Source of the DNA: Leidyana gryllorum EB-2025a
Taxonomy: Eukaryota > Protista > Apicomplexa
Assembly: GCA_048772705.1 (NCBI GenBank)
Contig: JBLWGC010000224.1
Coordinates: 186,001 to 250,000 of the forward strand
Reading direction: 5' to 3'
Length of the DNA stretch: 64,000 nucleotides
The notes below the pieces were generated by a model that saw only the letters and a list, made by a program, of their open reading frames with translations, had not been told where the DNA came from and made no database searches. A program made the translations under genes and the position numbers. Below, piece by piece: positions 20,411 through 45,200 of the stretch; within the stretch, counting starts at the first letter, position 1; every line of letters starts with the position of its first letter.

Positions 20411-21095
20411 TTCCGAAGATTACGATAAATTTGAGACGTTGTTCGAGCACTTTCGCATCCGAGGATAACAAAGATATGAGAAGGAGTGATAGGGGTGCGG
20501 AAACGTTGGCCAGATATTGGCGGATCAAAGACGGCTTATGTTCCATCACGAAGGACTGATTGCTGATTGATCGATTGATCGAGCGTCCACACTTGTCGCT
20601 CTCACTTGGAGCTGGCCAGACGTTGGGTTGAAACAACAACAACAACAAGATCACATCTTATATCAAATCGAATATACACACGAAGCACACGTGCACACGA
20701 TTTGGGAGTTGGCCAGGATCTGTCTATAAATCGCGTTCACCAATGCGAGTGCGCCGTTGGATGATTTTCTGATGTATTTGTCCAACAAGGGCGCTTGAAA
20801 TGCATGTTGCCTGCATAACAAAATTACGACATATCGTCAGTCACAGGGCAAATCACTTACTCCCATAGTCAATCCGATGTAAAAGTCAAAATTCTTGCGT
20901 GATCGACGCACTCGGCGAGCTTTGGTCAATTCTGTATCAGGGTTGAAGGGGAGCGTGGGCCGGCGAGACCAGTTGCTAGGTGGCGGTTGATAGGAGCACA
21001 AACCTCTCATCTCAAACTTGTGTGGGAAAACTCTGTCACAACTTGCTCGGAAGGAAATCTACGTTCGATCATTGCCATGCCGATAGTTCCGAAGG

Positions 21096-23533
21096 GTGAC
21101 TGAACGTGGAAGAAAGCGATTTGGAAGATCATCAACTGAGTTTTCTCTGGTGACCAGACGGCTGCCGGACTGCCAGAGCTGGGAAGTAAATTCTTTGTTG
21201 CAGCGCTATCCGCCAGTCAGTCAGTTGATGGCTATGTTTTTGCAGTATGCGCGAAACAGAGCAGCAGTACGCTGTGGTGTTGGGGAACAGAACACAAATC
21301 GCAATAAGACAAGCGGTCTAGGAATACAATCTGTTCAGGGCTTTATTCGTTTCTTGCTTGAATTGAGTGTTCGGCTGGGAGGCGATGGGCCATTTCGCAT
21401 CTTTGTAGATGACTTGGAGGTTAAAAGACATTACAGCAACCGGAGAGTATTTTGGGGTTCGTGTGTGGCCTTACTGATCACATATGGCGATTGGACTGCC
21501 AATCCTTGCGTCAATCATCGAATTGCTCCAAGTTAGCTTAACGAACAACAAGGACTCCTTGAGATCCTCATGAAGCTCCCCTCTCTATTTTTGATGGCAG
21601 ACCCTATGGACCCTTGGCCAAAGGGCAGTGCATCGTGAAGGGCAAAAGCGCAGATTCGGTCATGGGCAGTTCAGGTTTCCTGCTCGGGCCAACTGATTTG
21701 GGCCGCGATCGAGGGTCAACCCGTACTACCAGACAGTGTGAATCTGACACTGAAACAAGTCTTGTTGCCCATGTAATCTTTAGCCCTCTGACGTCACTGC
21801 CTGAGCCACCGCCCCCTATTCCACCATGGCCAGATGAAGGGGGCGATGGTGGTTTCCGCCTTCTTCATCAAGGGTTGATTTCGAGACTAAGCCTCGACGC
21901 AAAATCGAAGTTGAGACTCGCAACACCCACTTGAGACCAGTGCTTAATTGTTTTCTACAAGATTCAGGTTTAGACACCCAAGATCGAACTGAACTTTTTG
22001 ATTCCCGTGCCACACCGAGAGCTCCCGCCCAGGGCTCCCGAGTGATGTCCATAAAGCGTCACAATGGAAGGAACGACGGCTTTTGATCCCAGTCATCTGG
22101 TATCGTTTCGCAACGACGGAATGCCTGACTCATATGTGTGACCCCTGTTTGCCGCCATACCAACAGATCCGATTGGCTACAAAGGTTAACCTTTGGACTC
22201 TGAGACACATTTGGAATGCTTTCGGCCGCAGACTCCAAGATACGGCGACTGATCCGCGTTCCGGCGAGTGTACGAATGACGCGTCGAGGACCTCCACTAC
22301 CCCCCATCCCCGTCCCCCTCAAGCCACTGATACTCTGTTGAAGCTTGTCATCCCTCCCTTCCACCAACCGATTCTGGCCGAACTGCACTTACTGAACTCC
22401 AAGAGAGCAGCCAAAAGAAATGCCACCGTCTTGATGGCGATCGAGAGACAACTGCGCCTCTCGGCTCTGAACTTGGACACAGAGGGGACGATGATTGGCC
22501 AATGGACGACAGATTTCTTTGAGACATTGAACAACGGGACCGTTGAGAACAGATGTCTCGATGTACTGAAAATTGTCCTCAAGCGAAGCGGTATCGATGG
22601 TGACGAAGTTGAGGATTCTTCGGACCTCTCGAGGAGGATTTTCGTGGATCCAAGTACCCAAATGCCACTAGCCGTGTGACTCACTCAAAGGTCTGGTCTG
22701 CTGACCCACAGGCAAGAGAGAGGCAGCAGCCGGAATTGCGAATGATCAGATCACTATTGAAGGGTGAGATGTAACCGAGAAATAACTATGCATTTGTGTC
22801 GAGACCGCGAAATCACCGATACCACACCCCATTAATATCTGTCGTCCGCTTACACACCCCCATCGATCACTTTGTCAAAGATAAAATCTTACCGTCCACG
22901 GCAGCTGATGGAGGCGTTGCTGTGATCAACATGAGACAGTTCGGTCTAAAATTGCCCTTCAGAATTCGAAGGTGCTTTGCGAGCATTTCGTCATCAGCGA
23001 ATGAAACAGGCGGCGATCGAGGGAACAGTTCTCTCTCAGATCAACATAGAGATCATTGAGGATATATGGTCCGATAGTCTGTCGGAGACTATCACATACA
23101 AAGACTTTCTGAAGGCCCGAAATCGCTCATTGCGATGCCACAACATCCCACCGATTCCCGCGTCCTCTGCGCGCTCCGTCAAGCCGCTGACGCCGGTTTC
23201 CTACAATCAGTTCAAAGCCTCTTCTCATCCGATCTCGAGTACCATTGCGTTCTCCCGGAGCAGACGTCTGAGAGGGTCAAGAGATTGCAGCCCTCTTTCG
23301 GTGCAGACCGGGGAATCCTCGCCTTGTGCGCGGCTTTGCTGATCAACAAAAGCATTGCTGCCATAATTGTTCCCTTGTCAATGCAGCCGCCTCCTGAAGC
23401 CCGACGCTCTCTACCGATCCATTCACCCGGCTCCCTGTCGCCACTGCCTCCGGTCCGAACGCTTCCACCCCGCCACAGCGAATGGTCACATTCTCACCCC
23501 ATTCACCAGAGATACGTAGGATCAGCTGCTTGA
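21096..23533 (+). CDS. Probable multi-exon hypothetical gene(s); structure unresolved
   Basis: Chain of + strand ORFs (21096-21536, 22083-22679, 22796-23342) with protein-like composition and candidate GT-AG sites. No family recognised. Confidence 0.3.
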
Positions 23534-24236
23534 TTGGGCTGAAAATGTCACTGTCGGGGAAGTAAGCCAGGCAGAGTGGATTCGCTGGAAAAAGATAAGA
23601 TCATAGGTCAGTGGAAGCGATGAATCCAAGATTCAGTGACGAGATCGTCGAGGAGGCTCTCTGACCAGACGTCAGCCGGTCGACTTTGCCGCAATGGTCA
23701 ACTACATAGTCATTCGTCCCACAATCGTCCGAAGAAGTAAAAGCACGACGGCGGCGAAGCGACAAAGTCCTCTGCAACCAAAAGGCGGTGTTCTCCACCA
23801 GTCGATCTATCGTGGGTGCCTTCAATAGATGGTGAATCTGATTCCAAAAAGTGCGGATCGTCGATCTAGATCCACTCCATCGAATTCTTGCACAGGATTT
23901 TTTGGTTTTGTAGCAATTCACAAGCCCCCGTCGTTGATCCCAATCTCACATGACTTCCTCATTTGCACACACGTGTGTTCTGTCATCATAGGAGTTGCCC
24001 ACGTACGTTACGTTCGCCAGTAGAGAGGAGGTTGTGAGCCCCCCCCTACGGCACTTAGATGAGATGGAGCGGTTCTGAGTAGATGTTGGGGATTTTTATT
24101 GAATCGTTCGCAGGTGAAGGGGAGCAAACTTAACAAGACGGCCCAGAATTAGAAAAAAGACCGAAATGAGAGAAAAAGTGGTGATAGTCAGCGCAGCAAA
24201 TATAAAAATGGTGTGATGGTAAGAAAAAGATTAGAT

Positions 24237-26762
24237 TTAGACGAGGGTGACAGTGAAAGGCAGTCGCTCATCAGCGGAGTTGAAGCCGACCCAAATAGTA
24301 AAGGTGCCCTTCTCAACAATATATTCCAGCTCGGGGGTATAGAATCCGAAGTCTTCCATGACATCGAGCTCAAACTCGAAATCAGCTGAGGCATCAGCAG
24401 CAGCGGCAGGGAACTCAATTCGCTGGAATCGGCGAAGAAGCTTGTTCGGAGGGTTATAGGTGCGGACATCGTCACGAACATAGACTTGAACGATCTCAGC
24501 AGATGCGTAGGGGCCACTCTTATTGAGAGTTCCAGTGATTTTGATCTTGTCTTTCACTGTGACCTCCTCTGGAGTGACCTGTACGTTACTTAGAGTGTAT
24601 TGGTTATAATGCAGTCCGTGTGCGAAGACGAAGCGCGGATCGGCCTTGGAGTCGATGTACTTGGAAACATATTGGACTGAACCAGAGTAGTCTTCGTCAC
24701 AGAGATACTGCTCCTTGTACCATACGCCATTCTCGCCCTCGACATTGCGCTCGCAGTCAACACCGTCTTTGAAGATGTCCCGGGTCGCGTTGGCTTGGTA
24801 GTAGAAGATGGGGATTTGGCCGACGTTCCTTGGTTGAGTGAAGGGAAGACGGCCGGTGGCGTCGTAGTGTCCAAACAACACATCGCGCAGGCCGGGACCT
24901 CCCTGATGGCCGGCAACCCAACCGTATACGACGGCATCGAGGTGCTCGACCTCCCATTCCATAATGTTTGCGCGTCCAGTAAGGAAGACTGCGATCAATT
25001 TGGGGCGTGTGGCTTCTGGCATGGCCTGGGCAGCGTCATAAGAAGCTTTCATGAGATCGAGCTGAGTGCCAGTGAGAGTCAGATCAGTACGGGACGTGGA
25101 CTCGCCGTTCATGACCTCAAGATCGCCGACGAAGAAGAGAATGTGGGTGAAGTCTCCCGAAGTGACCTTCTGGATAGTTTCGTCCCAGTTGCGCTGCATT
25201 GTTTCCTCGCCGTAGATGTCGGGGTAGAAGGGGTGAGTGTAGCCGGGAGTATAGTCACATCTGAACGGCGCGTTTTCAGTTTCCTCAACGGTGCCACAGA
25301 AAGAGCGTCTGTAGGTCATAACCTTGCTGGGATAGCAGTCCGAGACCATAAAGGCGCGGCCGGGCCAGGAACCAATCATGTGACGGGGCTCGTCAGCCAG
25401 ACTTCCGACCAACAGTACGTTAGTGGATTGTGTGTTGGGCATAGGCAGAGTCTGATCCTTGTTGGTGACCATGACAACGCTCTTGCGGACGGTCTCACGG
25501 GCGACTTCCATGTGGTTATCGTGACAGAAGAGGGAAGCATCGTAATCCGGTTTGTACAAAGTCTCGTTATCGAAGAGTCCGAGTCTGTCTTTGAGGGCAA
25601 TGACACGCTTGGCGCTGAGCTCGGCGTATTCGTGGTAGGTATGTCCGTCGGGAGCGATTTCGGCACCGACGGCATCGAGGTTGTCGAGGTAAACTCCGTC
25701 ACTCATGGACAAGTCAACACCCGCGTAAACACCTTTGCGAGCGGCGTCCTTGGCGTCTTCGGCAACCCAGAGAGATTGGAGATCGTAGACCGCAGTGTAA
25801 TCGGCCATGACGACACCGTCCCATCCCCAGTAGCCACGGATAATGTCGTTGATCATGAAGCGGTAGCCATGAGCGGCCATGCCATCCATAGCGCTGTAGG
25901 AAGGCATCCAGGTCCAGGACTCGAGAATGGCGGGCTTCATAGCTTGGAGGAAAACATTCAGAAGTTCAGAGAGGTCGAGATTGGCAGTTTGATAGTCTTT
26001 GCCGCCTTCAGGGAGACCGTAGGCAGTCACGTGCTTGATGCAGGTAGCCACACCTTCGCTCTGGAAAGCGCGGACGTAAGCGGCCCCGAGCACACCAGTG
26101 AGGTACGGGTCCTCGCCACTGCCCTCAGAAACACGGCCCCAGCGAGGGTCGCGGCCGATGTCGAGGTTGGGGCCGAAGGTCATGCGAACACCCGAGTTAC
26201 GAGTCTCGATGGCTGCAATTTTGGTGCCTTTCTCAATCAACTCGGGAGAGAAGGCCGCCGCCATTCCGACATTTAGCGGGAAGGTAGTTGCCTGGCCGTG
26301 AACGGTATCGTTGGCAAAGAGGATCGGCACATAACCAAACTCGGTGGCCATTTCCTGGACTTTATCGGTTTCAGGGCGCTCTTGCATGTTGAGGAGCGAT
26401 CCCACCAGGCCTTGACGGATGTAATCGCGGTAGTTTTCGGGGTCAAAGCCGCCGTCCTGGTTGCGCTCCCAGTCAAACTGACTCATTTGACCGTAGACTT
26501 GGCGACGAGAAAGAGAGTTGAAGGCTTTACGACCAGCCGCAGAGGTTTTCCATTTGGAGAAGATGTCATCCTTGAAGGGGTCGTGAGGACGAATGTTGAC
26601 CGCGTAGGTGATTTGATTAATTTCGGTCTCGTCAGTTAGAGTAAGCGGTAGAACGATGGCCAGCACCAGACACACCAAACCCAAGACTCCGGCAAACCAA
26701 ACAATGGGCTTGCGGATGTGGTAGGCAGACCCACCATCAGTAGCACCCTTCTCGCTGCTCAT
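24237..26762 (-). CDS. GH3 beta-glucosidase/xylosidase (BglX-like) with N-terminal membrane anchor, intronless
   Basis: DTVHG, TFPLNVGMAAAF, RDPRWGRVSEGSGEDPYL, CIKH, VVMADY (nucleophile), NGESTSR (acid/base), GRLPFT..RNVGQIP and a FnIII-like EIVQVYVRD domain; TM helix at aa ~19-41. Confidence 0.95.
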   Translation of the reverse strand: MSSEKGATDGGSAYHIRKPIVWFAGVLGLVCLVLAIVLPLTLTDETEINQITYAVNIRPHDPFKDDIFSKWKTSAAGRKAFNSLSRRQVYGQMSQFDWERNQDGGFDPENYRDYIRQGLVGSLLNMQERPETDKVQEMATEFGYVPILFANDTVHGQATTFPLNVGMAAAFSPELIEKGTKIAAIETRNSGVRMTFGPNLDIGRDPRWGRVSEGSGEDPYLTGVLGAAYVRAFQSEGVATCIKHVTAYGLPEGGKDYQTANLDLSELLNVFLQAMKPAILESWTWMPSYSAMDGMAAHGYRFMINDIIRGYWGWDGVVMADYTAVYDLQSLWVAEDAKDAARKGVYAGVDLSMSDGVYLDNLDAVGAEIAPDGHTYHEYAELSAKRVIALKDRLGLFDNETLYKPDYDASLFCHDNHMEVARETVRKSVVMVTNKDQTLPMPNTQSTNVLLVGSLADEPRHMIGSWPGRAFMVSDCYPSKVMTYRRSFCGTVEETENAPFRCDYTPGYTHPFYPDIYGEETMQRNWDETIQKVTSGDFTHILFFVGDLEVMNGESTSRTDLTLTGTQLDLMKASYDAAQAMPEATRPKLIAVFLTGRANIMEWEVEHLDAVVYGWVAGHQGGPGLRDVLFGHYDATGRLPFTQPRNVGQIPIFYYQANATRDIFKDGVDCERNVEGENGVWYKEQYLCDEDYSGSVQYVSKYIDSKADPRFVFAHGLHYNQYTLSNVQVTPEEVTVKDKIKITGTLNKSGPYASAEIVQVYVRDDVRTYNPPNKLLRRFQRIEFPAAAADASADFEFELDVMEDFGFYTPELEYIVEKGTFTIWVGFNSADERLPFTVTLV

Positions 26763-27020
26763 GAAAAATGCTCAAAGTAGAAAGCTTGGCTCGATGATCA
26801 AATCTGCTGCAGGAGGCGGACTGCTTCGATGTTTTATTACAACTTGTCAGTCGTAGATCGATGTGTGCGGATCCCAGATTTTGGGCCATGAATCTGGTTC
26901 GCACACAAGGATGATCTTTTACGTTGTTGACAAAGTCAGTTCAGCCAAGCAACTCACTCTTACTCTTCTGGGCCTTTTTACAGTCGACGTCGTCAAGTTT
27001 TTATCTGACTACTAATCATC
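26763..27020. promoter_or_regulatory. Candidate bidirectional promoter between divergent GH3 genes
   Basis: 258-bp gap between divergent ATGs; AATCTG motif three times (26801, 26875 reverse, 26891); inverted repeat ccagatt-N10-aatctgg. Confidence 0.45.
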
Positions 27021-29639
27021 ATGAGCGGTAATTACGCGGTTAAGCGGCCCATCGCTTGGATTGGCGGGCTAATCCTCTTGGCGCTAATTGTTCTCGCCAT
27101 CGTTCTTCCCATTACTGCTCGGAAGAAGGAAGATGTCATAATCAGTCGCTTCGAAGGCCACTACGAAGTCTTCCAGCCCTTTGCCGGAGACAACGATCCG
27201 TTCGCACTGCTCACTAACGAGCAAAGAGAACGTGCCCAAGCCGCCTTTGACAGCATGTCCGAGGAGCAGAAGCGCGGACACATCAACGTCTACCCTACTT
27301 ACGGCCTCCTCACCGGACCGCCAGTTGATGGCTTTGATAACACTCCAGCTGGCTTTGAGAAAATGATCCGCGATGGGTTGGTTGGGGCTTTCTTGAACTT
27401 TGTTGACCCCGAGGAAATTACCGCCATTCAAACCAACGCAACTGAGGAAGTGAGCGACAACTCTGGCTACCCTCTTATGCTCGGATTCGATATTATCCAC
27501 GGCTTCGCTACAATCTTCCCCGTCAACTTGGGTATGGCTTCCGCCTTTGACCCGCAAATGATCTACGACCACGCTGCCTGGGCTGCCCGTGAGGCCCGCT
27601 CTGTCGGTGTCAACTGGAACTACGGTCCCATGTTGGATGTGGGCAGAGATCCGCGCTGGGGACGTGTGTCTGAGGGCAGCGGTGAAGACGCTTATCTGGC
27701 TGGTACTTTGGGCGAAGCTTACATTCGAGGTTTCCAGGACAACAAGGTCGCCGCTTGTGTGAAGCACGTTGGTGCCTATGGCGTCACTCGCGCAGGACGC
27801 GATTATACTTCGGGTGAAATGGGCCGTCTGACTCTGTTCAACGACTACTTTGAGGCTTACCGTCGTGGTTTCAAGGCCAAGCCTCTCACTGCGATGGCTT
27901 CCTTCAACGCTGTGTTCCGCAACGCTGCCCATATGAACCGTGAACTGCTTCAAGACATTCTCCGCATCCAGTGGGGCTTCGACGGCTTTGTAGTCGCAGA
28001 CTGGAGCGGTCCGACCGATATGTTTGCCATGCGTGTCGTTGAGAACGGAAACCTGACTCAAGCTGGCGAGGCTTCGCTTGAAGCTGGTGTTGATATGAAC
28101 ATGTCTGATATGGCTTTCTGGACCGGTCTCGCCGAGAGCGGCAAAAAGCGCGCCAAATCCACTGGCCGCACCTTCCAGGACCACATCGACTTGGCCGTCA
28201 AGAGAATCTTGGCTGTCAAGGAGCGCATGAACATCTGGGATGAGTACATTCCTTCTGCCACAGCACCATCGCTTCCCTTCGATGACGCTATGGACTTTGC
28301 CGAGAAGGTCGCTGAGAAGTCTGCCGTTCTCCTTAAAAATGGCGAGTTCAATGGTGAAAAGGTCCTTCCGCTCGACCCGTCCCTTGATAAAGAGCTGTGG
28401 CTGGTTGGCTCCATCGCCGAGATTCCCCGTGATCATCAGGGATCCTGGTCCTCATCTGGTGTTCCCTACAACTCGACGGTTGTCACCGTCAAGAAGGCGC
28501 TCGAGCAACGCCGGCCCCTCGAGGAAGGCGGAAACTGGAAATACTTTACAGGATACAACACCACCTGGAGAGACGAAGACAACGAGGACGAAGCCGAGGC
28601 CTTGGAAACTGTTGTGGAGGCCTTCCGTGCTGCCAACCCCAAACCCGACACTGTGGTCTTTGTGGTGGGCGAAAACTCCAACCAGAGTGGCGAAGGAACT
28701 TCTCGAACCAACTTGACTGTCTCCGGCACCCAGTTGGTTATGGTAAAGCGCATTCATGAGATCAACCAAGCCATCGAAGATGAGACTCAGCGTTCCAAAC
28801 TGGTCTATGTCGTCATGGCTGGTCGCCCTCTGACTATCCCCTGGGAGGCCGAAAACCTCGACGCCATCCTCTACGCCTGGAACAATGGCGCTCGCGGCGG
28901 ACCCGCCATCTGGAACCTCCTGTTCGGTGACAAGAGTCCCAGCGGAAAGCTTCCCATCACCATGGCACGCAACGTTGGCCAATTGCCCATCTACTACCAG
29001 TACCGCGGCCATCGCGCCCAGTTGAACAGCGAGCAGTGGGATCACATCCTCGACCCCCACTACTGCCTCTGGGATGACAACAAGGAAGATCACCACCGCT
29101 ACCCCATTGGAGGCCGCTGCTACATGTCCAACTACATCGACTCCCAAACCAGCCCTCTCTACTGGTTCGGCCACGGTCTCACCTACTCTGAGTTCAAATA
29201 CTCCAATATTGAAGTCTCCCGCGATCAAATCGGTCTACAAGAGATCTACGCAGAGCACCCCAACGTCACTGTCAGCTTCCAAGTTGAACGTGTCGGCGGC
29301 AGACGCGATATCGAGGCGACTGAGATTGTACAGATTTACGTCCGCGATGTCGTCGCTTCTGTTATGCCCGCCTGGAAGAACCTCCGTGGATACACTCGTG
29401 TCACCTTCCCTGCCCTCGCTACTGCGGACGCAGACGAAGAGCCCCAGACCGCCAGCGTCGTCCTCAACCTCTACGAAGACTTTGGCTTCTGGAACGAAGC
29501 TATGGAGTGGGTTGTTGAGCCTGGCCGCTTCGACATTATAGTCGGCAAGAGCGCTCGTGATGAGGAACATATCGTGCCTTTCTATGTGATCGACAACAGT
29601 GGTAGAACCAACCTCCCGTTGGGTGCCCGAGCTGACTAA
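27021..29639 (+). CDS. GH3 beta-glucosidase/xylosidase (BglX-like) with N-terminal membrane anchor, intronless
   Basis: DIIHG, IFPVNLGMASAFD, RDPRWGRVSEGSGED, CVKH, FVVADW, SGEGTSR, SPSGKLPIT..RNVGQLP, LYWFGHGLTYS and a FnIII-like domain; TM helix at aa ~10-32. Confidence 0.95.
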   Translation: MSGNYAVKRPIAWIGGLILLALIVLAIVLPITARKKEDVIISRFEGHYEVFQPFAGDNDPFALLTNEQRERAQAAFDSMSEEQKRGHINVYPTYGLLTGPPVDGFDNTPAGFEKMIRDGLVGAFLNFVDPEEITAIQTNATEEVSDNSGYPLMLGFDIIHGFATIFPVNLGMASAFDPQMIYDHAAWAAREARSVGVNWNYGPMLDVGRDPRWGRVSEGSGEDAYLAGTLGEAYIRGFQDNKVAACVKHVGAYGVTRAGRDYTSGEMGRLTLFNDYFEAYRRGFKAKPLTAMASFNAVFRNAAHMNRELLQDILRIQWGFDGFVVADWSGPTDMFAMRVVENGNLTQAGEASLEAGVDMNMSDMAFWTGLAESGKKRAKSTGRTFQDHIDLAVKRILAVKERMNIWDEYIPSATAPSLPFDDAMDFAEKVAEKSAVLLKNGEFNGEKVLPLDPSLDKELWLVGSIAEIPRDHQGSWSSSGVPYNSTVVTVKKALEQRRPLEEGGNWKYFTGYNTTWRDEDNEDEAEALETVVEAFRAANPKPDTVVFVVGENSNQSGEGTSRTNLTVSGTQLVMVKRIHEINQAIEDETQRSKLVYVVMAGRPLTIPWEAENLDAILYAWNNGARGGPAIWNLLFGDKSPSGKLPITMARNVGQLPIYYQYRGHRAQLNSEQWDHILDPHYCLWDDNKEDHHRYPIGGRCYMSNYIDSQTSPLYWFGHGLTYSEFKYSNIEVSRDQIGLQEIYAEHPNVTVSFQVERVGGRRDIEATEIVQIYVRDVVASVMPAWKNLRGYTRVTFPALATADADEEPQTASVVLNLYEDFGFWNEAMEWVVEPGRFDIIVGKSARDEEHIVPFYVIDNSGRTNLPLGARAD

Positions 29640-30578
29640 CTGCCTGGCAAACTGACTGACTTTATGCTCAACAAGAAGCTTAACAAGTAACAGCGCAGCA
29701 GCGTCTACTTCTCTCCCCCTCGATCTCTTATCACATGCTTTGGACTCAATCCTCTATACACACACACACGCTCGATTACCCTCTATCCACTGTTCACAGC
29801 ACCATTTTTTGCTCCTTTTTATTCACATTCACCACTTTTTCACTTCTTAACCTAATTTGATCATTCTAATCAGTCCAAACATCAAAATGCACCGCAACAG
29901 TCACTCACACTGGGTGGCAGTGCCCGTCAACAGTGCCCAATTCCTTGATTTGATCTCTTCTTTACCTCGTAGTTGCTATGATTTGTTCACCTGGCGTTGC
30001 GACATGCATGTTGCCTGCCAAAACCATTTGTCTAGCTGTGAGTGTGTTTCTTCTGCCCTGTGACTAGCATGTATGTATCTTTACTTTGGGCGCCCGGCAC
30101 TTCCTGCGGCGACTATTGCTGGCTATGGATCGCTCGGGCAGAAGCTTGATGGGATTGTACCGGCAACGACAAGTTTGTGCGGACCGAGGCAGTAAAGTCG
30201 CACGGTCCGCGGCTGGAGCTAAAAATTGATACCTTTTTCTGTGGTGGTATTTCATCAGATCTCCGTACTCTGGGGTGACCGATGGGAACAAAATAGTCAA
30301 TCGTGTACACGAATGCAAATACATAGAGGGGATATGGTCGTTCCACCAACTCTGTTGTACAACGGCCATCAGCCGGGTTCCTGCGATAGAGGTTACTGGC
30401 CTTTTCACGTCGAATTGTGTATCGGTGATCTGCAATTTCTTGCTTTCGGACGATCTTGTATCGGTGTGTGCGTGCGTGTGTGTGTGTGTGTGTAGACCGC
30501 CGGTCGCTAGATAACATATCTGGCGGATTTGATGTAAGATAGCCAATTGGCCGGAAACGTCATCATTGTATAGTATTT

Positions 30579-33308
30579 TCAAGTGACCGTGACGTTGAGG
30601 GATTGGATGGGGCATTGTGAGTCGAAACCAACTGAAATTTCATATGAGCCAGGTTCAATGACCCATTCCAAGTAATCATTGTAAACGCCAAAGTCTTGCG
30701 GATCCCCGAGCATTATGAAGGTACCGCGGGTGCTTTCTTCAGCGGCGAACCCAATCCGCTCAAAGTATTTCAGGCGTTTGACTGGCGCGACGATGTTGGA
30801 ATTAGTTTTACGCATATATAATTGCAGTACAACGTCAGCAGCCCATTGGTAGTTCTTGCGAACGTTGACAGAAATAATAAACGGTCTCACAGATTTGGAG
30901 TTCCATATCAAATCCGAGGATTCGGCCCCAAAGATTTCGAACTCACCATAGCTCATTCCCCAGCCAAATTCAACCAATGGCTCCTCGTCGGCGTCAGCAT
31001 AGACAGGTCTATCATAAGGGTCCAAATCGCCCGCGCGGTAACCCGCAGCGTAATGTGTAGGAATTTGGCCGACACTGCGAATAAGGCTCATGGGCATCCG
31101 CCCTGCCGGGGAAGTATGGCCCAGAAGAAGGCGACGGAAGGCCAATCCGCCGCGAGTTCCAGCGTGCCACATCCAGAGGACTGCATCAGCAGCCTCAAAA
31201 AGCTCCTCAAACAAGATCGGCCGGCTTGCACACACGACAACAAGTAACGGCACTGGTGGATCGTACTCATCCCTCATTTCTATGAGTAACTTGCCCAAAC
31301 GTACTTCTTTGGCGTCGAGCTCGAGGAATGCTCTGCTTGACTCCGCCTGCTTAGCAGTTTCGCCAATGAAAAGTATCAGCAGACTCGGGCGGCCTTCGCC
31401 AACGGTATTCCGGAGATCAGCGGCGACCTTTTCATCTTTCATGGCTTCAGTCATTCGCGGTTTCGCCGCCTTTGTCTTTGTTGTTCCCTTCAATGCTGAG
31501 AGCGGCTCTCCATTTTCGTCCTCCTGCTCGTCATCGTCGTCATCGTTCGGTTCCCGATAATAAAGGATACCGAGATCGGGGTCAGTGTCTCTGGGGGCGT
31601 TCATTGACGATAGATCCTCGCCGTATGCCACTCGCGAGGGGCCGCTTACGCCCCCATTCCCGTTCTCCACGGCGCTCACATAAGTGGTAATATGATCGGC
31701 ACACCCGCCGTCTTCCAACAAGCGGAGACCTGCAACGGGCTGGGGTCCCAACTGGTCGACTGGGTCGTCCGCCTTGGATCCGCCAATCACTACCCACCCG
31801 CCCGTCTTGATCGGCAAAACTTGATTGTCATTCTTCAACAAAACAGCCGAACGCTCCGCGGCCATCTGTGCGAGAGCCAAAGTACTTTCGTCACACAAGG
31901 ATCTCTGAACAAACGCCCTCCTCGTCATATCGTTCCCCTCCGCGTCGGCTTCGACGTCGACTTCGAATCCTACAGAGAAACACACAAATGTCATTCATTC
32001 ATTCATTGTACTCGAAATCGCCCTTTGGCCTCGGCCCCAAAGATAACACACACATACAAACTTACCACCAGCTCGCGTCTTTGGACCGCGGGACTGTGCC
32101 TCCTCTGTCAATATGCCCAAAGAGTATTTCATCTTGATCATCCGCTTGGCGGAGAGATCGATGTGCTCCTGGATCTTGTGTCCCTCATTAGTCACACTGC
32201 CCGCGATCGCAAGTCCGTGGTCAATTACTGCTCTGTCGCCATTGAAAACGTCAATTCCCGCATACATTGTGCCCGCCAAAGCAGTTCGCTCTGTGGCATA
32301 GACACCACGTCGCAACAATGCCTCAATCGCTCGACTTCCGCCTATCATCACCCCACGCCACCCCCACATCCCTCGAACCAAGTCAGATAGAATGTCATGA
32401 CTATCATGCAGTGCACGCCCGCCGTGAGAATGCTGCGCCACCATCGCGGCTGAAGCGTAAGAAAAGGCATTACGAAACGGATTGAGGTAATCAAAGTAGA
32501 ATTCGTTCAGATGAATGGCAGCCTCTCCGAAATCACGACCTCCGCGGACAGTACTCGGTGCCCCAAATTGAGTCACACAAGCCGCCAAACCCTCTCGCTC
32601 GTACCCCCGAACCATACTCACAGCCATCTCCGATGCCAGGTGGGTATCTTCGCCGAAACTCAAACTCGTTCCGGACCAACGGGGATCTCGCGAAATCGCA
32701 GCCGTCGGACCCAAACCCATATGGATGCCGACACTCCTCGCTTCCCACGCTATCACCCGTGCCACATCATATACAAACGCGGAGTCAAATGTGGCTGCCA
32801 AACCCATCGGCGTAGGAAAGATCGTAGCGAATCCGTGACTCAAAGTCGTCGCGAACAATAATGGCGGCGCACCTTCGGAACTCACTGCTGCCTTCACGCT
32901 CCGAATTTCATCATAACTATGCATGTCAATTATACCTCCCAGCGTTCCATTCACTGCGGCTTTCCTCAACTCCTCCACCGAATAATCGTTGTAAGATTCC
33001 AACCGCAACTGCGCCACACGCTCAGCCCCACTCAGACCCTCATACACACGACGGGCCACCTCTAAGGTTGCTGATTCAAACGGATCTGGAAGATCGAAAA
33101 CATCAATATGGTTTATCGGGCGCCGTATAGTCACCAGTGTGTCACCACACCCTACTTGCGTCGCCAGTGCCAAGTACACTACCACCATCAACACGATCAA
33201 TGCCGATATCATTAGCGGAATCAATATCCATATCCATCGTTTCGCCCATGTCACCTTGCTCCCGCTCACGGTACTGACCGTTCGGTGAGTTCCGTACTCT
33301 TCAGACAT
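30579..33308 (-). CDS. Divergent GH3-fold protein lacking catalytic residues (pseudoenzyme), 2 exons, membrane-anchored
   Basis: A 96-nt GTAAGT..GTAG intron (31970-32065) joins the two ORFs into ~877 aa. GH3 scaffold motifs are kept (FATIFPTPMGLAATFD, RDPRW, SAVLLKND, SPAGRMP..RSVGQIP, FGWGMSY), but KH becomes TQ and the xDW nucleophile motif becomes GGS. Confidence 0.85.
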
Positions 33309-36164: not shown

Positions 36165-37909
36165 ATGCTGGGCTCAGATGATTCGAATGCCCACAACGTT
36201 GCACAAGGGCTATCGGCCATCTTCGGCTTGTCATTAATTACAAAGGTTGTGAGTTTCGGTTTATCATGTCTAGCCATACCACTCATGACGCTGCCGTGGT
36301 ATGGCGTCCATGCAGTTCATTTGTTCGTATTTGTGACGCTGACGTCGTGGCCGCGAGTCGAGTGCTTTCGCAAGGTCATTCTGAGGTTGTCGCATGCTAC
36401 TGGGGTCGAGAAAGCTTCGCGGACTAATCTGGAACGAATATCCATGATACTGACTTTGGCGGTTACATCGGTGGCGGCCATGATTTGGTGGTACCGGCCT
36501 CCCGAATTGGTGCGAGAGAGTCAGCAGCTCATTCGAGACATATATAATGTCAGTATCGCCTTGCATGTTATTGCCAGCGTGATAACGGCTTTCGGGGAGC
36601 GGCTTTACTTGGAGTTATGCTTTGCGGAGATGTTCAGGAAGAAAGCACACTTGGATACATTCGGAGCTATCATTTGGGCTGCGTCATTTAACTGTCCTTT
36701 CCTCGTCTTGCAATTTCTAGATCGCCTGGATATGGCGCCGATCGTACTTCTATTGGTGTCAGGATTGTCACAATGCATATGGGCTCTGGGAACCATGATC
36801 TACACTGCGTGGGTACTACGACAAGGTCCCGTAGATGTACTTGCTGGCATCTGGGATCAAATCAAGTTTGTCCGTATCATCGACACCCAGCGGAGACTGT
36901 TGGTTGAGGCTCATCGCGAGTTCTTGATGGTTGAGCTCGTTACGTCAGTGCAGAAGTACGTGGTGGCGGAAGGAGATAAGTTACTGATGATGCGATATCT
37001 CGGGCCGGAGTCTCAAGGAGCAGTCAGCCTGGTTCAGAATCTTGCAAGCGTCCTGCTGAGAATGTTCTTCTTGCCTCAGGAAGAGATGCTGGCCATTCAC
37101 TACAGTGCCAACAATATGGGACAAGTGGCAGGCGAGTGGAGTGTTGGACAATGGTTTACCTATCTCGAGGTGTTCCGACTAGTTGCATTTGTGGAGTGGA
37201 GTCTGGGGCTCGCGGCAGCTGTTTTCGGCCCGCTCTTCGCATCCTCAGTGATGTTGTTTGCATTCGGATCAGAGGCTGCTGAGTCGCAGAGCGAGTTATT
37301 GGCGAGGTGAGTTGGACACTGATACAAATATCTCACATACGGCACAGATATTGCTGGGTGATTCTTGGGGCTGGAATATGTGGCGTCATGGAAGGTTTCT
37401 TGAACAGCAGCGCATCTGCGCACTGGTTGCGCATCAACCAGAAGTTCAGTCGGGTGTCTTGGCTCGTGATAAATGGAGTGGCAGCAGGATTATGGGAAGT
37501 ACAGCGGAGGACTGGTGACTCGATATTTGGCTGGAAGGACACCACCATTTGGGTCTGGGCGAGCGGTATGACCTTTGGATCACGAGCCATAATTCCATTG
37601 GTGATGTTGACTCGCCACATTACGCGTGCCCCAAAGTATAAAGGCCTACGGGATTTAGTGCGAGTGGTGTTCCTGAAGCAATGGATGCTCATGTTGGCAG
37701 TACAGCTTGCGCTATCTATTGCTCTTCGATATGCCCCGACAGTGCACGCGCTGGAGCGGGTCGCATTGCTGGCACCGGAGAAATTACGTCATCGGCTGGA
37801 GGTCAGCAGGTTGATGTATTGCGGGCTGACTGGAGGCTCAGTGCTGCTCTTGGCAATTCGTCCGGCGTGGCGTCATCGCCGCTACAAGTATCACTCCAAG
37901 ATGGTGTGA
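36165..37909 (+). CDS. RFT1: RFT1-like oligosaccharide translocation protein
   Basis: Polytopic; KYVVAEGDKLLM..QGAVSLVQNLASVLLRMFFLPQEE matches RFT1 K.LLTEGD..QG.Y.L..N.GSL..R..F.P.EE; ECFR motif; GVMEGF. One short intron near 37307. Confidence 0.8.
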
Positions 37910-38482: not shown

Positions 38483-39364
38483 ATGAGCTCTCGCTTGAAG
38501 GCAGCCAAGCGCAACCTCGAGTTCTATCGGGTGGCTTTCGGAATCGAGCCGCCCTACAAAGTGATTGGTAAGGAAGATGGATTGAGAGTGGTGCTGCAAA
38601 TAGCCATTGTAGTCGATGGTCCTTTAGTGGCTGCCTGTTTGGCCCAGAAGTTGGACCCCATCACGGTTATATCGAAAATACTTGGCAACAAGGTTGAATT
38701 AGGTAAGGGGGTGCAACAGCTACTCACAATTGCGTTTGCAGTGACGACGCGATGCGGTCTGGCCGAAATTCAATCATTGAAAGGTATGATGAAGGAAACC
38801 GTTGACTGGGTTACGAAGAATCTTCCCAAGTTCAATTGTGTCCATAAACGGCTGCTGGAGAATGGTGAAGACCAGCAAAAGGAGGAAGAGGCAGCAGATG
38901 TTGAGGAGAGTGATAAGCCCTCACCTGCAGGGCCTGCCAAGACGATCAACTGCTATCAATGCATTTGCGACCTGAGTGGTCGTGGTAATCCGTTGCGTTT
39001 TGTTTACGCCGTACAAGACCCTCGGTTAGTCAAGGTGCTCAAAGAGGCTATGGGAGTACCTTTGGTGGTGTTACAAGGGAACCGAGCAGTACTGTGGCAG
39101 CCAAGTGAGCGGTCGGAGCGCAAACACAAGAAGCGGGAACAACGTAAACTACACATTGCGGCCTGGGAAAAGGAGGTGCTGGAGGGCGAAGCAGCCGATG
39201 AAGGGGCCGCAAAGAAGAAACGCAAGGGGCCAAAGGCCCCAAATCCACTTTCGGTCAAGAAGCGACGGACGACAAAAGATGGGCAGCAGAAAGGTTCGGA
39301 TGCAGCGGGTGGAGAGAAGAAGAGAAGAACGCGTTCCAAGAGCCACAGAACTCCGAAAAGTTGA
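38483..39364 (+). CDS. UTP23: UTP23 rRNA-processing PIN-like protein
   Basis: FYRVAFGIEPPYKVI|VDG, VTTRC, CVH..C, YAVQDPRL..GVPL, KKKRKGPKAPNPLSVKKR; introns 38568-38612 and 38703-38741. Confidence 0.9.
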   Translation: MSSRLKAAKRNLEFYRVAFGIEPPYKVIGKEDGLRVVLQIAIVVDGPLVAACLAQKLDPITVISKILGNKVELGKGVQQLLTIAFAVTTRCGLAEIQSLKGMMKETVDWVTKNLPKFNCVHKRLLENGEDQQKEEEAADVEESDKPSPAGPAKTINCYQCICDLSGRGNPLRFVYAVQDPRLVKVLKEAMGVPLVVLQGNRAVLWQPSERSERKHKKREQRKLHIAAWEKEVLEGEAADEGAAKKKRKGPKAPNPLSVKKRRTTKDGQQKGSDAAGGEKKRRTRSKSHRTPKS

Positions 39365-39441
39365 GGGAGGAGGTCTTGGGGATGGAGGATGGTCTTTGCT
39401 GGACACACACATTGAGTCAAACACACGGACGCGGCTGTATA

Positions 39442-42183
39442 ATGCGGTTGTATCTGATCAGCTGCTTGCTTTATTTGGTTGGCGCTGAAGATATAATTGC
39501 TGGACCATATGAGAATGAGGTAGCTCAACATATGGCGCGTTTGATCCGCGGACTTCGGTCCGAAACCGTGGTTGACGTACCGAGTCCATCGGTCCGTATT
39601 GAAGGTAGTGATGTGATACTCGATGGACCGGTGGACGATCCGTACGTGTGGTACAAATTCGAAACGACGAAACGCGATGCTTATCTGGCTGGTCGAGTGA
39701 TCGGTGCGAGTGACGAGGAAATCGCACATGGATTCTCCATTTTATGGTCCAACCTTAGCCAAGACGAAATTAAAGCCCCCGAGGGCTTCACATATCCCTC
39801 TAATTGGATTCATCCCGAGCATCTGCGCGATCATCCATCGCTGATGTTGATGCCGAAGCCTGAGGCTGTGATCATCAACGACATAAACGGCGACACTATA
39901 TATCATGACAGGAGCGATCCCTGGGCTCCGATAATCCGTATCACGGACTCTAGCAGCTTTGTATCCCGCCCCTACACCCAAGGTCCCTCGCCGATTCGCG
40001 CTTATGCAGCGAGATGGGCCGCTGCAGAGCGCGCCTGGTCTCGAAAGTCCTCCCCCGCCCGACCGAAACCTGAACCCGAACCCGAACCATATCGCAAGGA
40101 GTCGTCAGAAGGCGGATCCTCCCCGGCCAGTGATGATGGTGAGGCCGCTGTGGAAAGCGAGTCCCTCCCGCCGATGGCGGAGGAGAGTGCTGAGAACGGT
40201 ACCTCAGTGTCACTGCACGGGGAGGCACTGACGACCGCCGGAGACGCCGAGTCCGCCGCCACTTCCCCTCCTCCAAGTTTACCTGATGACGACGTTACCC
40301 CGGCTGTAGCGAAATCTGATGACGACGTTACCCCGGCGGTAGCGAAGTCTGCTGACATGCGGTCATACGTATTCGATATTAAGGCATTTTCTGCCACATT
40401 GGCGTCGAAACCCGCATCGGAAGAGAATACTAATGTTGAGGAGACACCAGCTGTCTCTGTTGCTGACGATGATGATGATGATGACGAAAAGGATGACGTG
40501 AGTAGTGATCCCGACAAAAGCACCGAGCTTATGAACGCGGCGTCTTCACAGGGTGAGACTCGAGGCCTTGCCTTGAAGTACGTGAACGCTCCCTCCTCAA
40601 CGCTGCCGTTACCGTCTCCGTCGACTACGATACGGCACAGTGCCGACTCTACTGGTAGTGGCAGCAGCAGCAACGGCAACGGCAATTCGCGTTTCGATTA
40701 TAATGCCCCATCGGAACCGACGTTGGAAGGCTACAAGAAGCCTCACCTATTGATCACTCCTCATATCGCCAATCCCGCACAGTTCCACACGAGTACCCAT
40801 CCACCCCTGGCTCCCCCGGTGGATATGCAGTTTTACGAGTTTGTTGAGGAGTGGGAGGGTAAGTCCGGCGCCACCCACACCACCACTGCCAGTCCCGTTG
40901 TGGAGCAGCTCAAAGGTCAATGGTTCCCAGTGGATGACAGTTATAGTCTGGAGACCAAACTGGGATTGGCCAAATGGCTCGCTCGGCACGAGGCTGCGCC
41001 TGAAGTGTCCTACGACTCACTTTACGTCCCGACTTCCTCTCCCCATATTCACCTTCAGCAGCCGCCCCCACAGCCCAAACTTATCAAACCCGCCATTCTG
41101 GACGGCGAGTTTGTTCCTTTCAAGCGGATCGGAGGGGTTAAATTCCTGCCGCAATCTTCAGAGCTCCACAAATCGTCGTCTCGCTATCCCATTAGCAGCA
41201 ACCCGCCGCCGATGGAGCCGCCCAAATTCCTCCCGCCGTCTTTGGCTAACATTCCTCCACCACCACAGCCAACAGTCGTCCAGAGCCCTCTGTCACCCGC
41301 TGTGCAGCAGCAACAAGCTGCTGAGACAAACGAGCTGTTCCCTCCGACCATTGTCGATCTGATCCCCGCCCCTCTCCGGGAACCGCTCCTCAACTCGCCT
41401 GCTGCCACAGTTGCCGCGCTCTTACAGCACCTCGGAACCACCACTACTAACAGTAACCCGGCGGCAGCACCTGAGCCTGCCGTTCCGGACTCAACAGTGC
41501 AGAAGAGCGACACGGGCAGTGTGTTGATTGGCGAGACCCCCTTGGCGGCGGCAGCTGAGTCTGCAGCAGTGTCAGGAGGAGTTGCCCAAAGTGACCGCAA
41601 TGACTCAGTTGAGGTCACCCAAGCGAGCAACGACAACTCGCTGCTGAAGAAGAAGCTTTCTGAGGGAATGACAGACGCGACTGAGGGGGGAGAGAAACAG
41701 TTGCTGCTGAATGAAAGCCCCATTGAGGCCAAGGCTGAGACTATGGAGGCTGAGAGGCAGCAGGACACAGAGACGGCTGAGGGAGGACGAGCAGAACTTG
41801 ATAATGTGGACCGGAATAGCCCCGGAGAAGGTGATGGTGAGGCAGAAGCCTTCGGATTGAAGAGACTGGGAGGGTATCGACCCGGAGTGGAGATCGGGCC
41901 TGTTTCTCTGTTGGATCCAGAACCTGATGCTGTGGTCGTTAGGGTTGGTGAAAACCTTCCGCCTCCCGCGGGAGTGAGTTATGGCACTATTTCTGTGGTG
42001 ATCCCCGAACCTTCCCGGACAATTGGAGTACCGCAAGTGCAGGAGCGATATGCTCTGGGATGTTGTGCACATGGTGTACGAGGAGCGTCGGAAGATCTTT
42101 TCCCAATTGCTGGTGACGGAGTCATGTCGTCATTCTTAGTTTTGTGGACCGTTGGCCTTATCGCGTATGTTTACATGTTATAA
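39442..42183 (+). CDS. Secreted/surface Pro-Ser-Glu-rich protein, candidate GPI- or C-terminally anchored
   Basis: Signal peptide MRLYLISCLLYLVGA; ~910-aa open frame; hydrophobic C-terminus SSFLVLWTVGLIAYVYML. Confidence 0.7.
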   Translation: MRLYLISCLLYLVGAEDIIAGPYENEVAQHMARLIRGLRSETVVDVPSPSVRIEGSDVILDGPVDDPYVWYKFETTKRDAYLAGRVIGASDEEIAHGFSILWSNLSQDEIKAPEGFTYPSNWIHPEHLRDHPSLMLMPKPEAVIINDINGDTIYHDRSDPWAPIIRITDSSSFVSRPYTQGPSPIRAYAARWAAAERAWSRKSSPARPKPEPEPEPYRKESSEGGSSPASDDGEAAVESESLPPMAEESAENGTSVSLHGEALTTAGDAESAATSPPPSLPDDDVTPAVAKSDDDVTPAVAKSADMRSYVFDIKAFSATLASKPASEENTNVEETPAVSVADDDDDDDEKDDVSSDPDKSTELMNAASSQGETRGLALKYVNAPSSTLPLPSPSTTIRHSADSTGSGSSSNGNGNSRFDYNAPSEPTLEGYKKPHLLITPHIANPAQFHTSTHPPLAPPVDMQFYEFVEEWEGKSGATHTTTASPVVEQLKGQWFPVDDSYSLETKLGLAKWLARHEAAPEVSYDSLYVPTSSPHIHLQQPPPQPKLIKPAILDGEFVPFKRIGGVKFLPQSSELHKSSSRYPISSNPPPMEPPKFLPPSLANIPPPPQPTVVQSPLSPAVQQQQAAETNELFPPTIVDLIPAPLREPLLNSPAATVAALLQHLGTTTTNSNPAAAPEPAVPDSTVQKSDTGSVLIGETPLAAAAESAAVSGGVAQSDRNDSVEVTQASNDNSLLKKKLSEGMTDATEGGEKQLLLNESPIEAKAETMEAERQQDTETAEGGRAELDNVDRNSPGEGDGEAEAFGLKRLGGYRPGVEIGPVSLLDPEPDAVVVRVGENLPPPAGVSYGTISVVIPEPSRTIGVPQVQERYALGCCAHGVRGASEDLFPIAGDGVMSSFLVLWTVGLIAYVYML
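40285..40350 (+). repeat. 33-bp coding tandem repeat x2 (DDDVTPAVAKS)
   Basis: Directly visible; copies differ only at synonymous positions. Confidence 0.9.
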
Positions 42184-42270: not shown

Positions 42271-45200
42271 ATGACCGAGATCTCATCGCAGAAACCGCTT
42301 AATGCTATAGACTGTCGCGCAGAAGCTGTTGCCGGTAAAGATATTGCTTGCCTCCCGCGGCGAAAGTTGGACGACGCGCGCGCCCCCCAAGTGAGTGGCA
42401 ATTTGACATCGAACACACGCATATCACCCATACACATCACAGAGTTTGCAACGTCTCCCTTTCCATGTTGGGGCTAAACACCACCATAATCGACTGCCTG
42501 CGGAGCCCGTCCGAGGCATCCCAGCACACAGCAGTGGGCACCCGCACACTGCTGAGCAGACGTCTCCAGCCTCTGTGGGTCTCACCATGGAACCTTTTGG
42601 GGCGCCGTCTCAACTGCAATCCGCTACTAATGTTCAGGTCGATCTTCCGATGATGGACGACGACGCAGCCTCGGCCACGGGTCATCGACGTACGACTATT
42701 ATAAAGCGAACTCGCAAGCGACCGCACACAACCACGACGACCACCTCAACTACCACGACGACCACGGCCACCACCACCGTGCCGCGACATCGGGCGGTTC
42801 AAGACAGTGAAGAATTATCGCTATCCGCTGATCCCGAAGAAGATGAAGCAGAAGAGGAAGACGAAGAAGGAGAAGACTCAATGGAGTCCAGCACTGGTGA
42901 TAATGACGCCGTGATGGATGATGAAGACGAAGACGAAGCGGGGGAGTCTTCATCGTCGTCGATGAGAAGAAATAGCGACCGGACGAAGAAGAAGAAGACG
43001 ACGACCACCAGTGGCAGTCTTCGACGCCGTCGACCTTTACAAGTCGAGTTGGGCTCGCCGGCGAATATGCAGACCGATGATCCTTTGTCAATGAGTACAG
43101 AGCTTCCGTCATTCTACAACGACGTTGAGGCCACTGAGGAGCCCGTTGGGCCGCCGATGATGCCCGGAGTCCAGAAGCATTGGCTGCACAAACATATCCA
43201 CGCGCCCATAGTCATGACTCCGACGCATCCGCCACCGGCTCCGCCGCGAGAGGAGCCGCGGTGGCATCACTGGTTTGAGATCTTTCCGTCGAAACGGCTG
43301 AAAGATTACGACGACGCTCTGGACGATACAGATGACCCCGTAGACGACATGGAACCGATATTCCGAGATGATATAAAGGTTTGGCCCCCCAGGCACGAGT
43401 CCGAAGAGGACAATTACAGTAGAGAGGTGCAAGAAGTGGAGTCCCGCTGGCAACATTTCCTGCACCACCATCAGCCGCATAAGGAACATCATCTAAAGCT
43501 ACCCTCCTGGCTCCGTCATCCATTCGGTGGAGGAGGAGGTACCGAAGATGCCGATTTTCCAGTAGTTCATTTGGGTCATCCTTGGGCTGAACAAGACCCC
43601 AACACTGACCAATGGGGCGATGACCCAGAGACTCTTATGGTAATGGGCATCCTTTCTGGAACAGTGGTGGTGCTATCAAGCTTCCTCCTCCTGCTACTGT
43701 GTATGCTGGCTCGCCAGACCAGACGCCGCCGCGCATGTGAAAGCCGCTGTCCCCCTCCCCCACCCTCTGATGAGCAGCAGTCCTCGTCTTCGGGCCGCCC
43801 GAGCAGCTCAGAGGACGACGGCATACCGCGTCTCGACATTAACACGCGTCGCACAGAACCGCCGACGCTGATGGGGCTCGACCCGCCAGACGACTCCTCA
43901 CGCGGCGGTGGAGGGGGACTGCGGTGCTCTCTGGGCGGCGTCGGGGGCAATAATAATCATCTTCACGGAGGCAACTCATCGAGCGAGAACATCTCTGCCT
44001 CCAGTCCTGGGGGTGGATTCAATTGTGCAAACGCTGTTGAAGAGCATCGACAACAGTTACATCGGGAAATTCAGCTCTTACAGCAAAAATACAGTCCACC
44101 AGCTGCAGTCTGTGGCCAAATTGATAACGCTGTCGTCTGCATTCAAGTGGACCCCGAGGAGGACGACGAGAGAGACTTAGCAGCAGCAACAGAACACCTC
44201 CACTCCCCCACCAGACGACGACAACAACAAAACCCCCCCCATTCAGACGAATGCTGCTCCTCTCCCGATCCAAAATGTCAGCCTGAGTTCGAGCATCAGG
44301 TCCTGAATATTGCTTCCGCCAGCCGTGCTGCCACACCTAGTCGGTCTGCCGCATCCTGTTGTTCGATCATCAGTCATCATAACAATCTTGGAGAATCACG
44401 GACTTGTGCTGTCCCATTGAACGTGCCGATCCAAAGACGACGACGGAGACGACGTGAACACCACTCGCTACCCTCACAGCGCTCCAGCAGGGATCTGTCG
44501 TCCCCGCCCTCAGTCAATCGCCGTCAAACTCAACAAGACTTCCTCCCGAGCTGTCGATCACATTCTCCATCTCTGTGCCGTCCAGACGATCACACACCCC
44601 TCCATCCGACCTTGGAGCTTCCAACAAAGGCGCAAAAATGTCTAACGTCGCTGCCGAGTAGGATTACTCCATCTTCTTGCGTCTATACTCCACCATCTGC
44701 CGAGCACTGCCAGGCGCAAAGAATACCCCATACAGCGGCATGCCGAATTCCAAACCCTTTCACTACAGCTCCTACAACCGCTCCCATCCCTGAAGACACG
44801 TGTCAGGTCCTGCCACACTTCCCAGACACGGCCCCTCTTCCGTGCCCCGGACCAATTGTGTGTGCTGAAGTGCAAATACCGTGTGATGATGGCCAGTCGT
44901 CCTCTGCACCGCCTGCAGAAGACAATGCGACAACGTGTTACTGCGACTTGAGCGCAGCATCAGTCTTGCGGAGGTCGCGGGTGGCTGAAGAACTCGATCA
45001 GCTGCGACCTCCATTACGGCACGAGCTCGAAGGCCGATGGGGGGGCGCTGGACCCACGGGCCAATGCTCCTCGTCAGTGCATTCAGCCGCGGCAGTGGAC
45101 AGCACACACAGCGACTGGAAGACCCCTCGGGAGATCGATTCTTCAGTTCGAGTACCAGCAAGCTTTGGCGACTGCTTTGACAAGCTGCCACGGAGACACC

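Follow-up and report, generated by a model that had tools for sequence, protein, structure and literature searches.

The question raised by this locus is how genes for a bacterial type of glycosidase came to reside in the chromosome of an apicomplexan-type parasite, and what they may do there. The window examined is a stretch of 64,000 nucleotides of Leidyana gryllorum EB-2025a (assembly GCA_048772705.1, contig JBLWGC010000224.1, positions 186,001 to 250,000 of the forward strand), and it contains three neighboring genes of glycoside hydrolase family 3 (GH3), referred to here as g1, g2, and g3; two further paralogues, g4 and g5, are located on another contig (C33). Well-studied apicomplexans import ready-made sugars and, to our knowledge, are not noted for GH3 enzymes. 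The reading that we favor, with a probability of roughly 0.55, is that the five genes form a BglX-like family which entered an apicomplexan-type (probably gregarine) lineage by one ancient bacterial transfer, and whose products would serve as anchored surface beta-glycosidases feeding sugar porters.

Two of the genes of the window, g1 (24237-26762, minus strand; 841 aa) and g2 (27021-29639, plus strand; 872 aa), are intronless single open reading frames (ORFs), both predicted to encode an active BglX-like exo-beta-glycosidase. The third, g3 (30579-33308, minus strand), has two exons and a predicted spliced product of 877 aa. Its first exon (32066-33308, minus strand) encodes a putative anchor and the GH3 N-terminal domain (PF00933), with the catalytic residues lost, while the second (30579-31969, minus strand) encodes the GH3 C-terminal and Fn3-like domains (PF01915, PF14310) and an acidic low-complexity insertion. 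The gene reads as two ORFs in the same frame separated by a single TGA, and this TGA lies inside an in-frame intron of 96 nt (31970-32065, minus strand; GTAAGT...TAG), predicted from the sequence, the 3' end of which is a pyrimidine run followed by TAG. Other introns of the window share its GTA...AG form, and alignment to homologues shows that its removal costs no conserved GH3 block. All three domains were above the Pfam cut-offs in g1, g2, and g3. A sequence-only reading of this DNA had described three GH3 genes of ~840-880 aa within 9 kb, two of them intronless and the third with one intron; the genes were found as described, and the motifs that it quoted, RDPRWGRVSEGSGED, R-N-VGQ-x-P, and GE-x-TSR, are all seen in g1 and g2. 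For the analyses below, g3 was searched, aligned, and placed in trees as two separate exon pieces, the exons being joined solely for length, hydropathy, and sequon counts.

To place these proteins among known GH3 families, homology searches were conducted in which the best 120-150 matches of each were considered. Among the matches listed from 5.8 billion clustered proteins, the best for g2 and g1 were bacterial BglX proteins with 30-37% identity. A HMMER scan of 1.84 billion representatives listed nothing above 41% identity, and no close relatives were found when JGI metagenome contigs were scanned with g2 and g1. Across all of the libraries and the JGI metagenomes, no relative above 41% identity occurred among the matches listed, mostly without taxon names. 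The few top-match clusters with a taxon name belonged to the Saprospiraceae and Muribaculaceae, all matches that could be named or placed in context were prokaryotic, and a protein atlas search returned generic GH3 clusters only. The best match in the PDB was BglX of Pseudomonas aeruginosa (E 2e-100), with a plant GH3 at 1e-34 and fungal GH3 at ~1e-17. BglX was also the best NCBIfam model (NF011678; 403 bits for g1, 422 for g2, and 413 for g5, with a cut-off of 666). The AlphaFold2 (AF2) model of g2, with a predicted local distance difference test (pLDDT) of 86.6 and a predicted template modelling (pTM) score of 0.88, was matched by Foldseek to the structures 5tf0, 5xxl, 3u48, and 6r5i (E 9e-71, target-normalised TM 0.91). 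The best matches in libraries, PDB, NCBIfam, and Foldseek are all of the bacterial BglX type, the affinity that had been suggested from motifs.

Trees were built using FastTree on 239 rows and on 100 rows, of which the smaller set held 76 named genomes taken from a GTDB scan, and mixture trees were built on 41-44 rows. The paralogues form one clade with support of 97 (FastTree, 239 rows), 100 (FastTree, 100 rows), and 99 (IQ-TREE LG+C20 with posterior mean site frequencies, PMSF; 44 rows), and when rooted on distant Anaerolineae GH3s this clade sits within successive bacterial clades with support of 98-99. Removal of the two catalytically dead copies, g3 and g4 (described below), leaves g1, g2, and g5 as one clade with support of 100, and removal of the active copies leaves the dead ones in the same bacterial core. 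The representative nearest to the clade of the window in the 239-row tree, P0157, sits in a prokaryotic operon.

RFT1, an FCP1-type phosphatase with a BRCT domain, WDR3, and SF3B1 share the contig with the cluster, each in several exon pieces, and the genome contains at least 15 loci with alveolin repeats together with four or more AP2 domains, a gene set which is of apicomplexan type as judged by its sequence. The GC content of the GH3 genes is 52-55%, and the correlation of their codon usage with that of neighboring genes equals the correlation of the neighbors among themselves. A distinctive codon bias was considered as a sign of recent transfer and was rejected, codon usage being host-like apart from GC at third codon positions (GC3), which is slightly raised in g1 and g2 only (0.64-0.65 vs 0.52-0.58). 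With all five paralogues in a single clade inside bacterial BglX, and with flanks, intron, and codon usage of eukaryotic character, one ancient transfer from bacteria followed by duplication is well supported by these comparisons. The sequence-only reading had proposed horizontal acquisition followed by duplication, and the GH3 tree with bacterial homologues, which puts the paralogues in one nested clade (97-100), agrees with it. The paralogues are only 23-36% identical among themselves, and therefore the transfer and duplication events must be old.

A six-frame search of the 15.5-Mb assembly identified exactly five GH3 loci, three in the window and two on contig C33; the proposed three-gene cluster therefore stands as a description of the window, but the whole family comprises five genes, divided between two loci. 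The second locus (L009, C33:168000-177900; positions within it follow) contains g4 (2063-4477, minus strand), a dead copy with a signal-peptide-like N-terminus and a hydrophobic core of ~15 residues, and g5 (4466-6838, plus strand), an active-looking copy whose ORF has no hydrophobic N-terminus. These two genes lie head-to-head with ATG codons only ~50-70 bp apart, and their 5' gene models or promoter arrangement, as predicted, are unusual or incomplete; an upstream exon encoding an anchor for g5 was looked for and was not found. At both loci an active GH3 gene adjoins a conserved dead one, with g2 and g3 convergent and g4 and g5 head-to-head.

The division into active and dead copies follows from the catalytic residues. 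The nucleophile position was set by alignment to D286 of P. aeruginosa BglX, for which PDB titles name D286N inactive mutants, and to BglX of Bacteroides thetaiotaomicron. In g1 the nucleophile D321 (25800-25802), the acid/base E554 (25101-25103), the K243-H244 pair, R204, and the arginines of RDPRWGR are kept, and g2 likewise keeps D327 (27999-28001), E558 (28692-28694), K248-H249, and R209. With complete catalytic machinery, g1, g2, and g5 are predicted to be active. The product of g3 has Gly324 at the nucleophile position (32337-32339), Thr246-Gln247 in place of the Lys-His pair, Thr155 substituting the Asp of D-x-x-HG, and RWSG for RWGR. Its acid/base site reads AESSR, and the Glu, which was aligned in one alignment and gapped in another, may be retained. 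Among 149 alignment columns that show conservation across 85% or more of 56 bacterial homologues, 103-112 are kept in the active copies, 92 in g3, and 73 in g4, and the columns lost in g3 and g4 yet kept in g1, g2, and g5 are mostly those of active-site motifs. The frames of the dead copies are nonetheless open (877 codons in g3, ~790-804 in g4), despite the longest branches in the trees. As the nucleophile, the Lys-His pair, and pocket residues are lost while the 877-codon frame is open, g3 is best described from its predicted product as a pseudoenzyme with an intact frame and not as a decaying gene. The sequence-only reading had counted the cluster as three glycosidases, and in this respect it has to be corrected, since the third gene, having lost both the nucleophile (now Gly) and the Lys-His pair (now Thr-Gln), does not encode an enzyme.

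The His-to-Gln change in the Lys-His pair is common to g3 and g4, and these two group together both in the tree without active copies (support 98) and in the 100-row FastTree. The dead lineage probably arose once, a provisional conclusion in that the two are joined as long branches. The active copies have in common a loop inserted after VGQ-x-P, containing two Cys in both g1 and g2 and no fewer than two in g5; in the multiple alignment no such insertion is present in g3, g4, or the bacterial homologues. In g2 this loop comprises residues 665-698 (29013-29114, plus strand) and has low AF2 confidence, and it may be stabilised by a disulfide and be peculiar to the eukaryotic enzymes. A separate insertion, a run of Asp/Glu in the C-terminal domain, is found in exon 2 of g3 at 31528-31546 and surroundings, and it is lacking in the other paralogues and the bacterial homologues.

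A short N-terminus followed by one hydrophobic helix had been reported for all three genes of the window, and each of them does have such a segment, of 22-25 residues with a Kyte-Doolittle value of ~3.0 and a more positive charge before it than after it. In g1 it spans residues 20-42 (26637-26705, minus strand; 23 aa; 19-mer mean 2.96; flank charges N +2, C -3), in g2 residues 11-32 (27051-27116, plus strand; 22 aa; mean 3.02; N +2, C +1), and in g3 residues 25-49 (33162-33236, minus strand; 25 aa; mean 2.99; N +3, C +1), preceded in all three by 10-24 polar residues ending in basic ones. This length and charge asymmetry are characteristic of signal anchors with N-in, C-out (type II) topology, and the segments are predicted to be such. 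In the AF2 model of g2, residues 11-33 are helical, residues 35-54 have pLDDT <50 and would form a stalk, and a confident catalytic body starts at about residue 60. The anchor motif previously noted in the two intact enzymes, Y-x-[IV]-[RK]-[KR]-P-I-x-W ... VLAIVLP[LI]T, is indeed present in g1 and g2, and 14 of 32 positions of this region are identical, including the block VLAIVLP-x-T. As this block is shared by two proteins that are only ~35% identical overall, a helix kept in the mature protein is favored, and the similarity would fit this better than it fits a discarded signal peptide.

Putative N-glycosylation sequons had also been listed for both enzymes. The listed sites exist, but their number is uninformative, shuffle tests on the count giving P = 0.51 for g1 and 0.06 for g2, and the sequons were accordingly rejected as evidence of glycosylation, being at chance level.

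On the basis of fold and pocket residues, our best guess for the predicted activity is that of an exo-acting BglX-type beta-glucosidase, and an exo-beta-1,3/1,6-glucosidase or a beta-xylosidase/arabinosidase is also possible. No GH1, GH5, or GH16 genes were found in the genome. No match to GT48 glucan synthase was obtained in the genome, in a search without a positive control, and no cellulose-synthase-like GT2 was above the cut-off there. Sugar porters of the major facilitator superfamily (MFS; PF00083) were identified at a minimum of eight loci in the 15.5-Mb genome, including a tandem pair at C180:23112-26522, a locus on the contig of the window (C224:29660-30916), and loci on C92, C104, C169, C194, and C230. 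For a genome of apicomplexan type, this seems to be a large number. Given at least eight porter loci and no GH1, GH5, or GH16 genes found, surface sugar harvesting is plausible. The pattern would fit an organism which trims and imports oligosaccharides and is unable to cut polymers, and it would fit endogenous beta-glucan remodelling less well.

Under the reading that we favor, the helix of 22-25 residues would act as an uncleaved signal anchor and give a type II layout: a short tail in the cytosol, a single helix through the membrane, a flexible stalk ~20-40 residues in length, and catalytic domains that are lumenal or outside. The active copies at the parasite surface would remove terminal beta-linked glucose (with xylose or arabinose as less likely products) from glycosides and short oligosaccharides freed in the gut by host and microbial enzymes, and the product would be taken up by the many sugar porters of the parasite. 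The dead paralogues might have been retained to bind sugar as subunits or to act as partners without catalytic activity. A set of three beta-glycosidases that seem active and are probably held in the membrane, together with many porters and no endo-glucanases, points to a specific feeding strategy, which, if true, would mean that the parasite lives on beta-linked oligosaccharides released in the gut by the host and microbiota.

A more speculative extension concerns the pairing of the copies. Solved BglX-type enzymes are dimers and an active gene adjoins a dead one at both loci, and therefore active/dead GH3 heterodimers may form on the surface, with the dead subunit binding carbohydrate, presenting substrate, or mediating attachment to the host, much as a lectin derived from an enzyme would. 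We regard this as improbable, though if it were true the heterodimer would be a quaternary design invented by a eukaryote on a captured bacterial enzyme.

Several points weigh against the reading of anchored surface enzymes of bacterial descent. The BglX equivalog cut-off of 666 bits is missed by g1, g2, and g5, and the proteins are therefore termed BglX-like and not equivalogs, with substrate specificity not being transferable. The donor region in the trees is a polytomy of Gemmatimonadota-, Bacteroidota-, and Pseudomonadota-type sequences. The main weakness is that sampling of eukaryotic GH3s, those of other alveolates among them, was uncontrolled in the searches and trees. The anchor is not family-wide, since the ORF of g5 has no N-terminal hydrophobic segment and that of g4 is shorter and signal-peptide-like. 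Cleavage after the helix is possible, the helix having been called from hydropathy, flank charge, and AF2. Type II topology is, in addition, the standard layout of Golgi enzymes.

With regard to the origin of the genes, bacterial contamination or a chimeric assembly would explain why the best database matches among those listed are all bacterial, but the genes are flanked on one contig by RFT1, FCP1, WDR3, and SF3B1, the GT..AG intron of g3 resembles those of its neighbors, GC and codon usage agree with the host, two more paralogues occur on a separate contig of 318 kb, and the closest bacterial protein among the matches listed has no more than 41% identity. As far as the sequence can tell, the GH3 genes are integrated in a eukaryotic chromosome, and contamination is effectively excluded. 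It is also conceivable, though quite unlikely, that the family was inherited vertically and goes back to an older ancestor, whether eukaryotic or alveolate, or to a much older transfer shared by alveolates. The family is old, its members being no closer to one another (23-36%) than to bacteria; its composition is fully host-like; GH3 is mentioned in dinoflagellate literature; and eukaryotic homologues may rank below the best 120-150 matches. Nevertheless, the 1.84 billion representatives gave nothing above 41% identity among the HMMER matches listed, those matches that could be named or placed were without exception prokaryotic, GH3 structures from plants and fungi lie much further away than bacterial BglX does, and the clade lies several supported nodes deep within bacterial sequences.

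The location of the proteins leaves more room for alternatives. The anchored GH3s could reside in the secretory pathway or the endolysosomal system, or they could remodel, at particular stages, glycans of the parasite itself (gametocyst or oocyst wall, glycocalyx, glycolipids), a real rival that we nevertheless consider somewhat unlikely. A short tail, a transmembrane helix, a stalk, and a catalytic domain are the classic plan of resident Golgi enzymes of glycan processing, and bacterial BglX works on endogenous periplasmic glucans, as the title of Mahasenan 2020 also has it. However, neither GT48 nor above-cut-off cellulose-synthase-like GT2 was found, both weak negatives and the former from a search without a positive control; helices of 22-25 residues are long and, as a general rule, more typical of late-secretory or plasma-membrane proteins; and three active paralogues beside a large sugar-porter set fit nutrition better. 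Alternatively, the helix could be a cleaved signal peptide, and the enzymes soluble and secreted to the gut lumen or to a parasite compartment. The homologous N-terminus of g4, with its core of ~15 residues, resembles an ordinary signal peptide; a small residue (Ala) directly follows the helix of g2; and the lipoprotein-like signal peptide of a bacterial homologue (P0121) aligns with the anchor region, and therefore the anchor segment may derive from a signal peptide. Against this, the hydrophobic cores have 22-25 residues, compared with the 7-15 that are typical when cleavage occurs, the n-regions are 10-24 residues long, and a block of nine residues is near-identical in g1 and g2 despite ~35% overall identity, which fits a retained helix. 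Cleavage is thus unlikely in our estimation, and retention of the helix as an anchor is preferred.

Comparison with known systems shows what is shared and what differs. Bacterial BglX-type GH3 enzymes (6r5i, P. aeruginosa; 5xxl, B. thetaiotaomicron; 5tf0, Bacteroides intestinalis; 3u48, compost JMB19063) share the three-domain architecture and fold, and the catalytic Asp, the Glu of GE-x-x-SR, the Lys-His pair, and RDPRWGR also occur in g1, g2, and g5. The parasite proteins differ in being 30-41% identical to them and below the BglX equivalog cut-off. Their genes are eukaryotic-chromosomal, a helix of 22-25 residues stands where the bacterial proteins have a signal peptide or lipoprotein peptide, a two-Cys loop follows VGQ-x-P in the active copies, and two of the paralogues are dead. 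Rumen ciliates possess laterally acquired bacterial-type glycosidases. The gut protist Blastocystis has laterally acquired bacterial-type glycosidases of families GH29, GH33, and GH95 (PMC5608401). As in these gut-protist transfers, a presumably gut-associated eukaryote here has integrated prokaryote-derived glycoside hydrolases, probably for gut glycans, but the family is GH3, the host is of apicomplexan type, there are five copies, three of them with a predicted anchor, and dead paralogues are conserved. The capture of glycosidases by gut protists is well known; the predicted anchor, the Cys-loop insertion, and the conserved dead paralogues are putative eukaryote-specific additions to the captured GH3. 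Neither a GH3 nor a beta-glucosidase in gregarines or apicomplexans, nor any GH3 pseudoenzyme, was found to be reported in the literature searched.

In the brush border of animals, sucrase-isomaltase (GH31) is a type II-anchored exo-glycosidase situated beside sugar transporters, an arrangement known as membrane digestion. It provides a working analogy only, in that a signal anchor and stalk hold a large exo-glycosidase ectodomain; the fold and family are unrelated, and the topology and location of the parasite proteins are predicted. If the transfer is as proposed, it would add a clear and datable bacterial gene capture to a group of parasites with barely explored genomes, and the enzyme and dead-enzyme lineages would be a natural pair for studying why pseudoenzymes are retained. 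The proteins lend themselves to simple tests using recombinant ectodomains and standard substrates.

A number of other features were noted in and around the cluster. From the FCP1-like gene to g1, the region 20411-24236 contains short ORFs only, and the two tested (22083-22676 and 23135-23530) had no Pfam match. Two long ORFs, of 940 aa (39361-42183, plus strand) and 1177 aa (42446-45979, plus strand), have no Pfam match at E <= 0.001. The RFT1 gene (36165-37307, plus strand), of the N-glycan precursor flippase family, is located 3 kb from the cluster; its presence means that the organism probably makes dolichol-linked N-glycans, and its adjacency to the GH3 genes is probably coincidental. The start codons of g1 and g2 are divergent and separated by 258 bp (26763-27020), a region presumed to act as a shared promoter, in which repeats are short only and of a size expected by chance. 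The convergent neighbors g2 and g3 have 3' ends 940 bp apart, and this gap contains a (GT)15 microsatellite at 30464-30493.

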